Numbered from the whole stretch's first letter, positions 58,255 through 63,366 are shown. The stretch is 63,366 bases of DNA, filler included, from Ministeria vibrans ATCC 50519 (GCA_943704425.1; 5 parts of 5 records of this genome joined end to end with filler, not necessarily neighbours in it), one strand, 5' to 3'. Numbers and translations are program-made. Notes: generated by a model from the letters alone, not told the origin.

Positions 58255-61200
58255 TCACCCTCATCAATGTTGTCCTCGGCGCGATGCATTCCCACATTGC
58301 CATACATGGGATTCTCCTCCATGTCGCTGGGCACCACCGAGTCAAACTCGGACGCCACCGCGCCACTTAGCGACGACATCGCGGTCAGGGCAAATGCACG
58401 TCGCTCCATTCGCGCACTTCCTGCACCATCAGCACTCTCACGTCGTCGAGACATACGGAACATGTTTCCAATCTTCTGGCGCACCGATGTGCCGTGGTGC
58501 GAGGGAGCACGCTGCAAGGGCAATACTGGCGCAGTTCCATTGAGCGACTGCTCAAACGTGTCCTCGTCCGCCGAACCGTCACGTAGACCTACGGGCACCG
58601 CAGCACGACGACTCGCGCGCACACGTTGCACACCACCACTCATTGTCGACCCAGCATCGCTGCCATTGTGGTCTCCGCTGGGCACGGCCACGTCCACAGG
58701 CTGCAGCGTCGACCAGCGACGTCCAACCGCACGTCGAATCTCGCGCCATGTCTGACCGCGCAGCATAAAGAGAACAAAGAGAAGGAAGCCCTGCGTCGAG
58801 TTAAGAATCACAAAGAGGTACCAGGCCACAAGTCCCGCTCTCAACGCCACAAACGCCATCACCCACGTGAGCGAAAGCGCCACAATTAGCGCCACCGTCA
58901 ACACAATGAGTCGACGGAGGCCCGCATGCGACGAGCTCGAGGCGCCTTTTGTCTTCTCACGAGGCGCAACTGCAGAGGCAAGTTCCGTCTCAGAGGTCGT
59001 CTCGCTGACCACACTCGCAGGGCGAATCTTCGCCTGTTTAGACTTGACCTCGTGTGAAGCTGCATTGACTGAGCGCGACTCTATCAGCCGACGCACCACC
59101 TGAACAATGACAGTCGCGTTGAATATGACCATGAGCGACAGAGGCACCAGTACGGCGCCAATGAGTCCGCCACGCGTCGAAATCCAGCACGCATCTCCCT
59201 CAGCAAGACCAAACACGCGCCCGTTTGTGCCACTGTCCACCAACACAACAATAAGTGCGGCCACAAGAGGCACACCCCAGCCACAGATGATCAGTCGGCG
59301 CAGTGGCGTCGGCGCACCAAACACAGTCACAAGATGGAAGCGCATGTCCCAGGCGACACACATGCTCCAGCACAGCGTTGCTATGAGAAAGTAGTAAATG
59401 AGCGTGCCCATCGCACGACACGTCGTTGTGCCACTGCCCGTCTGTCCAATGCCCGCCAAGAAAAACAGATTCAAAAAGAAAATTGCAAGGGCAAGGTTCA
59501 TCAGAACCTTTTGCGGGCGCAACTTTCGCAGTTTGTCAACGCACACAAAGACTAGCACAATCAGCAGACAGCCCAGCATGGAGAGCGCACACCCAAGATA
59601 GGTGAGTGTCTCCAAGGCAGTCTCGTGCTGCAACGACACCGCCTGCGGCTCAGAGAGTTGATAGCCCGCTAGCAGCGCAAAGGACGTCAAATGGAAACAG
59701 CGACACTGCGTCTGCGTCGCACTCGTCCACAGCAGCTCACAGCCTTCCTCACTCCACTCGAGCGCATCCTCGTCCCAGTACACACACGCACGTGGTGCTG
59801 CAATCTTCACTCGGTGATCAAACGTGAGCAGCACCGCCGTGGCATTGCTCAGGCCTGATACCGACGCATTGCCAGTGTGCAAACCGGCTGTCATCGAGAG
59901 CACGGACGAGTCAATGCGCTCTGTCTCGTTGTCCACGCGCGACACGAGCGGCGAACGCCGAAACTCAACCAGACTCGCGTCAATACAACCACTTGTCGCA
60001 AGCGACGGATGCTGCAAGAGGACCTCGTCAATGAAACCGCGCTGCAGCTCCACCGTGCCCTGTGCTCCCGCATAGCCGTGCTCAAGGTGCGTGCCATTGG
60101 CCGCACGCTGCAGCACCACACGCAGACTCCTGGCACTCAGCTTGGTCTGTTGGTCGCACGCCTCGCGTCGCAGCAATACCTCTGTAAATTTGTGGGCCAG
60201 TGTCGCAATCTTGTTCGACTGTGTGCTCTCATTTCGAAGAGCCTAAACAACAAACATATTAAATCAGGTGCATCATTTTTTACTTTTTTTTGGTTTTGTG
60301 TTTTTGCATCTTACGTCGAGCGATTTGTCTTCAAGAAGCGACCCCAACGACACAAATGTGTTGTCGGTAGCATTGACGGTTGCAGAGGACTCGTTGCTCA
60401 GCGAAAAGTCAATCACTTCGTCGAGTGACTCAAGAATGATCCCAACTGAGCGCGATGCGTCGGTGGTGTTGATCCACTCGGCGTTGTGCGTGACTTGAAC
60501 AAGGCGATTGGTGTTTGCCTCGAGTGTCTCATGTGTCTCCGTGGGAGTCTCCAAGAGTACCTGCAGTAGACAGACGACCGAGTCGAGCGGAGCATTGCCC
60601 ATAAGCTGCGCGCGTCCCCCATTCACCACGGGCCAGTCCACATAGCGCGGAGTGCACAGCTGTGGATTGTTGAACACACGCACCACTCCTGCGACACTCG
60701 CGAGCTGGTTGAGGTCCTCAAGGGTGCGCAACTCGGCATTTGATGCGATTGTAAGATCTCCGCCAATTGTCAAGAGTGACTCGAGACCCGAGAGCGCCTC
60801 AAGTTCCAACCGTACGAGCTCTATGGAACCGCCAAATGCAGTGATGCTACTATTCATCAGAGCAACATTCTGCAGAGCAGCACAACCGTCCAGTGTGACC
60901 CGCGACAACACTACTCCACGAGACACGACGTCGGGCACAAATGTATTTAGAGGTGTGGTGAGCGCACCGAGGCGCTCAAACAGCACTGTGCCCACAACCG
61001 ATGCAACAGGGAATGCATGAATGTGGGTCAGGGCGGCGCAGTCACTCATGCGAACATCTGTTACATTGACCACCGAATCAAATCCACCCACCGTGTGCAG
61101 CACGGCATTGTCTAAGATACTCAACGAAGGAAGCAACACAAGCGACGCAAACGGACAGGCAAGTGTCTGAAGAGCGCCATTGCCACTGACCACAAAGGAC

Positions 61201-63366
61201 TGCACAGACGTCAGACCCGCCAAACCCGTACACACGTCGAGAAGAGCTCCATTGCCATGGATAGTGACCGTGTTTACGTCAGTAAGAGTCGCAATGCCAT
61301 TGAGCGACACAAGCGAGCTCATGTTGGCCGCCGTGAGTGTACTCAGGGAGGTCGTGGTCGGTGCCAAGATAGAGTCGAGGCTTGTAAACACACCAGCGGC
61401 GTCCAAGTATAGCGCATCAGTTACTTCCGTCCCGCCCAGAGCGCTCACATTCGCCAACACATCGTTTTGCACGAGACGCACGGTGTGTGCACTCACAACA
61501 CTGGACAGACCACTGAGCGTGGTCAGGGACGAGCAATGCGACACTTCAAGTGTGCCAGAGATGGTCACTGACACAGAACCGAGTGCCGCGAGTGACACAA
61601 GCAGCGGATTTGCCGTGATGATGAGCGACGGGACCACACCCGCCGAGACTGAGCGACGTCGTCCGCCCCCGACACTACCAAGATGATCCAGTTGAAGTCC
61701 ATTCAATGACACCAACTGGGGATTGTCAGAAATCTCCAGTCCACCCGTGAGGTTCTTGAGCGAACCCAGAGTCGTCAAGTCGGTCAAATTGGTGAGTCCA
61801 CTTAGCACAAGAGTTCCCTCAACTTCTTCAACTCCATTCAGCGCTGCCAATGGGTCCATACCATCCTCGCCATCACGAACGACAAGATCACCAATCACCT
61901 TGCGACATCCACGGTAGGCGGACAAGCGCGCGCGCCACGATGCATAGCCAGAGGGAAGACCACGCGATCCAGAGGCACCGCGACAGTCGCGTTCACAGAG
62001 CGCACCCCACGTATTGGCAAGACAGGCACACTGAAAGGTGAGCGCCGTCACATTGTCCGAACACACGCCGCCATTCTGACAGGGCGACGAAGCACACAGG
62101 GTCGCATCAATCTCACATAGATCCCCAACGAAGTGAGGGCGGCAGGAACAGGCAAACCGATCGAGATTCGGCTGACGACACGTGCCTCCATTCTGACACG
62201 GAGACGACGCACACTCGTTCAAGTCAACCTCGCAACGCAACCCTGTCCAGCCAGCGGCACACGAGCACAAAAAGGAACCAAGTGCCGAAGAATTAGTGGA
62301 GCACACACCACCGTTGATGCACGGCGACGATGCACACTCATCTATGTCCTCACTGCACGACACGCCTGTGCGGCCTACCTCACACCTACACACATATCCA
62401 TCCACAACAGAGGTACACGTCGCCGAGGTGAAGCACGGTGACGAAGCACACTCGTCAATGTCGATTGCGCAATCATCGCCAGTAAACCCACTGACACACT
62501 CGCACGTGTGTGTGCCAACTTGGTCCAGGCAGGTGGCGCCGTTGGAACAGGGCGAAGACGCACACTCATTGAGGTCCGTCTCGCACACGACGCCTGTGTA
62601 GCCAGACGCACAGTCACACTCAAACGGCGAGGAGGGAATCAGGCGAGGCGCAATCTGCAGTCGTCCCGTCATGCTTGGATGAATCTCACACGCGTAGTCG
62701 ATGGTACCCGACCTATTTACAAGTAGACTGTAGTTTTCGCCAACGGCAATGATACCGGAGGCAAGAGTCGCGACCGAAGAGGCATTGCCCAACAAAGTGT
62801 GATTTGTGTCCGAGACAATCCACACCACAGTGTCACCCACCGTAGCGTTGGTCACCACAGGGAAAGGACCACATGCCAAACACCAGGGAATGGTGTGAGT
62901 CACCGGTTGAGACACAAGGGACATACACGTTCCGGCATGTGCACACGGGGTTGACGCGCACTGATTGATCTGTGTCTCACAGAGGTTTCCTGTCGAGTGA
63001 TCATGGCAAGTGCACGTGAACGTGCCTGCACCCAAATTTGCCACGCAACTGCCCTCGTGATGGCACGGCGACGAAACACACGCATCAAACAGTTCGCACA
63101 AGAGACCCGACCCGCCTGGACGACAAGTGCAGTTAAACTCACCGGCACCCAAATGCGGCGTGTCGAAACACGTACCGCCGTCGGTGCATGGTGACGAGGC
63201 ACAGCCACGAATGTCACTCTCGCAAAGTTCCCCAGTGTAGGACTCAGCACACACACACAGGTAACCATCTAATCCGTCGGCACACGTGGCACCATTCTGG
63301 CACGGAGACGACGCACACTCATCCACGTTCAGCTCACAAAGCGCACCCGTATATCCCACAGAACAT
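58255..63366 (-). CDS. Adhesion GPCR: at least 9 EGF (one hosting a cupredoxin), receptor-L domains, GAIN/GPS, 7TM; both ends incomplete; intron ~60182-60314
   Basis: GPS CVYWD...WSEEGC...CRCFHL/TSFALL; TM1 LTYLGCALSMLG, TM3 CRAMGTLIYYF, TM4 GWGVP, ECL2 CWI, TM7 LNSTQGFLLF. Confidence 0.93.

Follow-up and report, generated by a model that had tools for sequence, protein, structure and literature searches.

A cupredoxin domain with a predicted type-1 copper site nested within an EGF repeat of a predicted adhesion GPCR from Ministeria vibrans

Known settings of cupredoxins and of domains nested in EGF-like modules

Adhesion GPCRs owe their definition to the binding partners of their ectodomains and, to our knowledge and in the literature we searched, no metal redox centre is known among the domains that make up those ectodomains. 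In the laminins, L4 domains sit between Cys3 and Cys4 of the LE modules (PMC5338690). The receptor-binding domain of the ephrins has been proposed to derive from monodomain cupredoxins (PMC6485061), and the plant phytocyanins (stellacyanin, uclacyanin, plantacyanin, and the early-nodulin-like proteins, ENODL) are blue-copper domains that carry glycans and in many cases are tethered to the membrane at the cell surface (PMC10048054, PMC3184959). The adhesion GPCRs of choanoflagellates, filastereans, and animals combine EGF, LRR, and receptor-L regions with a GAIN/GPS region bearing an HL|T site and a 7tm_2 domain, and the main text of a survey of choanoflagellate GPCRs makes no mention of cupredoxin or copper (PMC12716839). 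An adhesion GPCR of the choanoflagellate S. rosetta is reported to have been edited by CRISPR (bioRxiv 10.64898/2026.06.27.734982). We found no description of a cupredoxin in an adhesion GPCR in the full-text literature, where the two terms meet only in a review that discusses ephrins.

Here, we describe a gene from M. vibrans ATCC 50519 that combines the two. The gene was found in a window of 63,366 nucleotides (the whole stretch of DNA that was analysed, in which five parts of the genome are joined with filler). A sequence-only reading of this window had proposed that a blue-copper-type domain lies inside an EGF of an adhesion GPCR, at the Cys3/Cys4 site, and this proposal is confirmed by the reading frame, the cysteine spacing, the Pfam matches, and the homology of the inserted segment to cupredoxins. 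The receptor shares with its choanoflagellate, filasterean, and animal counterparts the domain types listed above, with the GAIN/GPS region represented by its GPS motif. With laminin LE/L4 it shares an EGF-like module that houses a passenger in its Cys3-Cys4 interval; however, the laminin host is an 8-cysteine LE module, whereas the host here is a 6-cysteine EGF, and the L4 passenger is CBM35-like, has no metal redox centre, and belongs to a matrix protein, whereas the passenger here is a cupredoxin in a GPCR. The likeness to laminin is best regarded as an analogy of architecture and not as membership. Because of the laminin L4 precedent, the idea that the Cys3/Cys4 hairpin serves as a reusable socket is less novel than the sequence-only reading had held, and it is the combination of cupredoxin and adhesion GPCR for which we found no report in the literature searched.

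As in the ephrins, a cupredoxin fold is displayed on a cell-surface signalling protein within the animal lineage and its relatives. Ephrins, however, lack the copper ligands and possess disulfides of their own, whereas the ligands of the M. vibrans insert are intact and its sequence is much closer to those of bacterial blue-copper proteins. The glycosylated cell-surface blue-copper domains of the phytocyanins find a parallel in an insert that carries N-glycosylation sequons, but phytocyanins belong to the Cu_bind_like subfamily and are either stand-alone or fused to arabinogalactan regions, being neither nested within an EGF nor part of a GPCR.

The host gene and its split EGF repeat

The gene occupies 58255..63366 on the minus strand, as do all of the features described below, and is partial, since both of its ends are cut by the edges of the sequence piece. 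It was delineated from open reading frames and Pfam matches, with the two exons searched separately rather than as a joined, spliced protein. Exon 1 (60315..63366) extends up to the piece edge as a 1015-codon open frame that ends ...KSLD before a GT, and encodes the EGF array, the cupredoxin, a receptor-L/LRR region, and the N-terminal part of the juxtamembrane region. Pfam matches the EGF array with an E-value of 5.6e-48 and the Recep_L_domain with 8.4e-10. There follows a 72-nt intron (60243..60314; GTAAGA...TTTAG), recognised from its sequence, from a spliced contig (contig 25 of run X6, below), and from its position, which matches that in a relative's gene. Exon 2 (58255..60242), which was defined by translation and Pfam and runs off the piece, encodes the GPS, seven transmembrane helices, and a cytoplasmic tail. 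The GPS (PF01825, E 5.8e-13; 59670..59705) reads C-R-C-F-H-L-T-S-F-A-L-L, in which 59685-59693 encode the consensus HL|T cleavage site, and is the part of the GAIN region that is matched by Pfam. The transmembrane domain is of the secretin/adhesion class (7tm_2, PF00002, E 8.9e-29; 58782..59618) and matches profile positions 3-249 of 250.

The order on the minus strand is, in summary, EGF array, receptor-L/LRR region, 72-nt intron, GPS, and 7tm_2. We found a nearly full-length class B 7tm_2 profile, a GPS with its HL|T site directly ahead of the first transmembrane helix, and a long N-terminal fragment made up of adhesion-type repeats, with no fewer than nine EGFs as well as a Recep_L_domain/LRR region; as judged from these sequence features, the host gene is a multidomain adhesion GPCR. 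The relative's gene mentioned above (P0151, on contig L018) has 60% identity to exon 2 and, at the end of exon 1, 66%, with the intron in the same position. No orthologue spanning the insert region was found in the search with exon 2, and the 2.8-kb contig of L018 ends before the EGF region. The gene's DNA recurs in seawater, algal, and biofilm metagenomes, and its host is a marine protist that probably belongs to the Holozoa.

In the frame read from 63359, upstream EGF repeats (residues 1-133; 62961..63359) and five downstream EGF repeats (residues 260-458; 61986..62582), both assigned from Pfam and cysteine spacing, flank the repeat that is split (residues 134-259), which the sequence-only reading had placed, correctly to within one base, at 62583-62961. 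A listing of the cysteines in all repeats of exon 1 shows that the eight other EGFs of the open reading frame conform to C-x4-C-x5-C-x8-12-C-x-C-x8-C. The split repeat is spaced as its sisters are, save for 102 residues between Cys3 and Cys4, and because the eight sister EGFs have 8-12 residues there, we conclude that an insertion of ~92 residues lies in the Cys3-Cys4 hairpin. The N-terminal half of the split EGF, C-ASTP-C-AHAGT-C (residues 134-145; 62925..62960), supplies Cys1-Cys3 (C134, C139, C145) at the spacing of the other eight EGFs. The C-terminal half, C-D-C-ASGYTGVV-C (62583..62618), supplies Cys4-Cys6 (C248, C250, C259) and was assigned from its match to positions 17-30 of the Pfam EGF profile and from its spacing. 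The split repeat therefore has all six EGF cysteines in the spacing C-x4-C-x5-C ... C-x-C-x8-C, and F246 provides the aromatic residue that most of the other EGFs also have two positions ahead of Cys4.

Two linkers join the halves to the domain that they enclose. After Cys3, seven residues (MSLVSQP; 62904..62924) precede model residue 8, where the alignment to plastocyanin residue 1 starts, and ten residues (PRLIPSSPFE; 62619..62648), read from the sequence, lead back to the EGF. In an AF2 model of the nested construct, the EGF halves have pLDDT values of 39-64 and are unreliable, and two extra cysteines within the insert, C160 and C163, permit alternative disulfide pairings. When paralogous EGFs were added to a MAFFT alignment, the EGF Y-x-C-x-C was wrongly paired with the cupredoxin Y-x-C-x-I-H.

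Identity, fold and transcription of the inserted domain

The motifs GDTVVW, NHTL, and YACEIHPSM, from which a cupredoxin had originally been surmised, were all found in the translation. Using phmmer, we compared the insert (101 residues, Cys3 to Cys4) with the PDB and obtained amicyanin at an E-value of 1.2e-5, with the predicted ligands aligned to the amicyanin ligands. The match to the NCBIfam amicyanin model (TIGR02657) has an E-value of 1.5e-6 but scores 28.5 bits against an equivalog cut-off of 110.2, and that to Pfam Copper-bind (PF00127) scores 18.3 bits, under the gathering cut-off of 21.2; Cupredoxin_1 (PF13473) was not reported for the insert in the Pfam scan. A HMMER search of 1.84 billion representative proteins produced 1,694 matches at E<=1e-3, 214 of them at E<=1e-10, with a best single-domain score of 47 bits. 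These matches lie well outside what chance would produce. Of the best 150 of the 1,694 matches, 146 look, from their cysteine content, N-terminal sequence, and EGF pattern, like bacterial multi-repeat proteins with C-x2-H-x2-M in each repeat. The other four of these 150, among them two cysteine-rich giants of ~3,000-3,700 residues, are without the exact C-x2-H-x2-M spacing; an EGF pattern was found in none of the best 150 of the 1,694 (above about 65 bits). All eight of the top matches that were sampled by Pfam are Copper-bind/Cupredoxin_1 proteins and, because of these matches to family members, the homology of the insert to Copper-bind/Cupredoxin_1 holds below the Pfam cut-off.

The nearest relatives of the insert are bacterial, at 30-42% identity, and those that are named belong to the Chloroflexota and Verrucomicrobiota. 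A scan of JGI metagenomes returned 17 loci, all of them small prokaryotic cupredoxins (32-50% identity), around none of which was an EGF context found. The decapeptide CEIHPSMTGR is identical in the insert and in two prokaryotic cupredoxins, L006 and L015. Since IHPSMTGR was among the search patterns, so that identity of the ligand loop in the JGI loci is partly a selection effect, we did not count it as a sign of constraint. Word-indexed protein searches with the insert alone, or with residues 131-262 of exon 1, revealed no eukaryotic or EGF-embedded relative, a result to which the length window of these searches gives little weight; the ESM Atlas yielded nothing beyond an uninformative chordate EGF cluster (0.75).

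Structure prediction, which the sequence-only reading had suggested as a check, bore out the assignment. Modelled alone by AF2 with an alignment (A5) of 16 single-domain prokaryotic relatives, the insert forms eight strands at a mean pLDDT of 86.9, and its model residues 7-93 match whole plastocyanins (chain residues 1-99) and amicyanin with VIA-align Z scores of 10.0-10.7. In the nested construct, the cupredoxin core has a pLDDT >90, and Foldseek aligns the model to amicyanin 2gb2 with an E-value of 5.5e-5 and an rmsd of 1.8 Å over 74 columns. Because the match to whole plastocyanins and amicyanin runs over the whole domain, we consider the cupredoxin domain to be complete; based on AF2, VIA-align, and Foldseek, its eight strands span residues 153-237 (62649..62903). 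By homology, fold, and ligands, the insert is a member of the cupredoxin superfamily, despite its sub-threshold Pfam score.

With amicyanin (~30% identity) and the Copper-bind and Cupredoxin_1 families, the insert has in common an eight-strand Greek-key fold and His/Cys-x2-His-x2-Met at homologous positions, and it keeps the bacterial Copper-bind family motifs G-x-T-V-x-W, H-T, S-G, and Y-x-C-x-x-H-P-x-M-x-G. Unlike amicyanin, it is housed in an EGF repeat of a eukaryotic protein rather than being a free periplasmic electron carrier; it also has an extra C-x-x-C and five N-x-S/T sequons, and is without the methylamine dehydrogenase context. To judge by these sequence comparisons, the insert is of bacterial ancestry and amicyanin-like, the resemblance lying in the type of ligand loop, and it is not an amicyanin orthologue.

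Contigs from four public runs of four different studies (X1, X6, X11, and X14, of which X11 and X14 are environmental) were placed on the piece. Contig 25 of X6 joins 60241 to 60314, with 60242-60313, the predicted 72-nt intron, removed, and the depth of X6 within the intron is zero; X6 is therefore RNA with little DNA carry-over. Contig 28 of the same run covers 62331-63310 colinearly and with zero differences and, because this spliced-RNA run reads straight through the insert, we conclude that the mature transcript retains the cupredoxin between the EGF halves. Both insert junctions are covered in all four runs. The depth over the insert equals a single covering contig, and we therefore take the insert to be single-copy at 90% likeness; the adjacent EGF bins draw many paralogous contigs. 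GC3 is 0.58 in the insert versus 0.57-0.64 in the rest of the gene, and the GC at each codon position resembles that of the host gene. We also considered that the segment might be an assembly chimera, a contaminant, a retained intron, or a very recent, unameliorated transfer; all of these are unlikely given the contigs at both junctions and the codon GC.

The predicted copper site and its possible roles

The predicted first copper ligand, His187 (62799..62801), lies within the sequon N186-H-T and aligns to the ligand histidine of amicyanin, and the predicted ligand loop, C224-E-I-H227-P-S-M230 (62670..62690), aligns to the C-T-P-H-P-F-M of amicyanin. In 300 bacterial repeats, the column of H187 is 100% His, that of C224 98% Cys, that of H227 99% His, and that of M230 98% Met. 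The insert also keeps P167, G175, W180, T188, S201, G202, G207, G218, Y222, P228, and G232; these residues and the ligands match columns that are 82-100% conserved in the 300 repeats. All four type-1 copper ligands, and most of the second-shell residues of the family, are thus retained. The ligand set as originally read from the sequence stands, inasmuch as all four ligands are present, but its label of amicyanin/plastocyanin does not, as C-x2-H-x2-M is the spacing of amicyanin; that of plastocyanin is C-x2-H-x4-M.

Other features set the insert apart from its bacterial relatives. Hydrophobic residues have taken over four positions at which the family is 79-90% conserved (N182V, T190L, F199L, and D200A). 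An extra pair of cysteines, C160-L-A-C163 (62871..62882), is located in the loop between cupredoxin strands 1 and 2 and has no counterpart in the family; none of the 300 bacterial repeats has a cysteine in the C160 or C163 column, the latter being an inserted column, and in alignment A5 the two cysteines replace a family I and F. There are five N-x-S/T sequons in the 101 residues of the insert versus three in 354 EGF residues, and the N186-H187-T188 sequon would put a glycan beside the predicted copper ligand.

We consider it probable, at roughly 0.6, that the insert is a structurally real, nested cupredoxin that serves as a copper-loaded distal docking module, a figure that mostly reflects the structural identity of the domain. 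The two chain ends of a cupredoxin both sit at the pole opposite the copper site, so that the linkers can close on the EGF hairpin with the predicted copper site and the exposed His227 facing outward. An amicyanin-like domain of bacterial ancestry would have been inserted at the tip of the hairpin between Cys3 and Cys4 in one EGF, and the EGF stalk would hold it such that the predicted copper site and the His227 patch point outwards. Secreted eukaryotic cuproproteins are usually loaded within the secretory pathway, and the cupredoxin may be loaded with copper there. It might then act as the distal ligand-docking module of the receptor, where a partner that docks on the His227 patch would exert a pull on the N-terminal fragment, bringing about the usual GPS/tethered-agonist triggering. 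Gating of the docking by the Cu(I)/Cu(II) state would be a further, less likely step. The short C-x2-H-x2-M loop is of the kind found in amicyanin, whose exposed histidine, in the reduced protein, becomes protonated and flips around neutral pH, and a flip of His227 would be the most concrete route from redox state to a changed binding surface. The sub-threshold Pfam score, the four changed positions, and the N186-H187-T188 sequon were counted against copper docking, as were the exon 2 search, which revealed no orthologue spanning the insert, and the low pLDDT of the EGF halves.

The main rival, which we regard as distinctly less probable, is that the insert is a scaffold only, that is, a copper-free β-sandwich adhesion module comparable to the ephrins and the plant early-nodulin-like proteins. 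Such a fate has a precedent, in that the receptor-binding domains of ephrins are cell-surface cupredoxin folds that have lost copper binding (PMC6485061), and the replacement of four family-conserved positions and the gain of five N-glycosylation sequons in 101 residues are in keeping with it. However, ephrins and ENODLs have lost the ligands, whereas in the insert the four ligands and the Y-x-C-x-x-H-P-x-M-x-G loop are intact. With the rest of the domain diverged to <=~42% identity, GC3 host-like, and the ligands still in place, a long residence with the site preserved is suggested. For a scaffold, the persistence of the ligands would have to be put down to too recent an acquisition or to a stabilising effect that they also have on the apo fold.

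That the ectodomain senses external copper or ambient redox state, and thereby regulates G-protein signalling, as the sequence-only reading had proposed, seems doubtful to us; it is less likely than a docking role and should be treated as a possibility, not as the default. In its favour are an intact predicted type-1 site on an extracellular signalling receptor, the short amicyanin-type loop with its redox- and pH-linked histidine flip, and the extra C-x-x-C, which by homology is positioned in the loop that helps to form the exposed-His patch of plastocyanin. Type-1 sites, however, are rigid, coordinatively saturated electron-transfer centres that barely change whether the metal is absent (apo) or present (holo), as Cu(I) or as Cu(II), and it is for this reason that we rate sensing low. 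Both apo-pseudoazurin (1pzc) and apo-plastocyanin (2pcy) are among the structural matches of the insert, alongside holo forms. Moreover, secreted cuproproteins are normally loaded in the Golgi, and any coupling to the GAIN domain, ~600 residues away from the cupredoxin, would be hypothetical. A more speculative suggestion, and an improbable one, is that the type-1 centre and the adjacent, lineage-specific C-x-x-C might together constitute a redox switch on the outer tip of the receptor, in which case the gene would be a living example of the step that has been proposed for the origin of ephrins.

It is highly improbable that the insert is an artefact, whether as bacterial DNA joined to the gene in assembly or as a segment that is left unspliced or is not translated: its closest relatives are all prokaryotic, and no eukaryotic protein with such a domain was found in the word-indexed searches, the best 150 HMMER matches, or the ESM Atlas, but the insert is in frame and free of stops within the 1015-codon exon, is flanked exactly by EGF half-motifs, has host-like GC at its codon positions, and has its junctions in contigs of four runs from four studies, one of them demonstrably of spliced RNA.

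A predicted copper-competent cupredoxin on an adhesion GPCR represents a directly testable metalloprotein module in GPCR signalling, and is relevant to the proposed origin of ephrins from cupredoxins that were moved onto cell-surface proteins. The Cys3-Cys4 hairpin of the EGF, which is used by laminin L4, here accepts a quite different passenger in a unicellular lineage. If the redox switch were true, a protist close to animals would read the redox or copper status of its surroundings through a metalloprotein ectodomain, and a bacterial-type, copper-competent cupredoxin would have been recruited to a cell-surface receptor before the loss of its metal, as has been proposed for the ephrins.

Contig depth over the EGF array

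The segments of the receptor gene at 62017-62529 and 63214-63366 had a summed contig depth 5- to 20-fold above that of the remaining gene in all four public runs mapped, and many spurious contig "joints" fell in the same two segments. EGF repeats of the C-A-S-S-P-C type form a large, near-identical family in this genome; the bins covering the cupredoxin showed single-copy contig depth. One contig from the environmental run X14 (contig 23, 62396-62675) carried 17 differences, clustered at 62426-62494 in the EGF directly downstream of the insert, and the X14 contigs adjoining it carried none. These differences probably arose because the assembled contig took in sequence of an EGF paralogue or of a variant strain.

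The cytoplasmic tail and a related gene

C-terminal to the 7TM region, the gene encodes a long cytoplasmic tail rich in Arg, Ser, and Ala (58255-58780, minus strand), which continues past the edge of the piece and, in the part within it, had no Pfam match. Metagenome data also contain a scaffold of a related organism (L018:1-2810) whose gene shares 60% identity with exon 2 and 66% with the end of exon 1, and has an intron (GTAAGA...TGTTAG) at the same codon position as in the gene studied here; the scaffold stops short of the EGF region, where any cupredoxin of this relative would lie.

Sequons, cysteines, and the ligand loop of the insert

Five N-x-S/T sequons (N171, N186, N192, N209, and N215) lie within the 101-residue insert (62622-62924, minus strand), compared with three in 354 EGF residues, and one of them, N186-H187-T188, contains a predicted copper ligand, H187. 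Such enrichment may have arisen as a domain of bacterial type became adapted to passage through the eukaryotic secretory pathway. The loop joining cupredoxin strands 1 and 2 also holds a C-L-A-C pair (C160 and C163; 62871-62882, minus strand), in whose columns no cysteine occurred among 300 aligned bacterial repeats. The pair could form a local disulfide, provide a C163-C248 staple to the EGF cysteine, or constitute a second metal or redox motif.

In two alignments of the insert with added paralogous EGFs (A3 and A4), MAFFT repeatedly placed the ligand loop of the cupredoxin, Y-x-C-x-I-H-P-S-M-T-G, opposite the Y-x-C-x-C-x4-T-G motif of the EGFs. The likeness is superficial, and could misdirect automated domain calls in similarly nested proteins.
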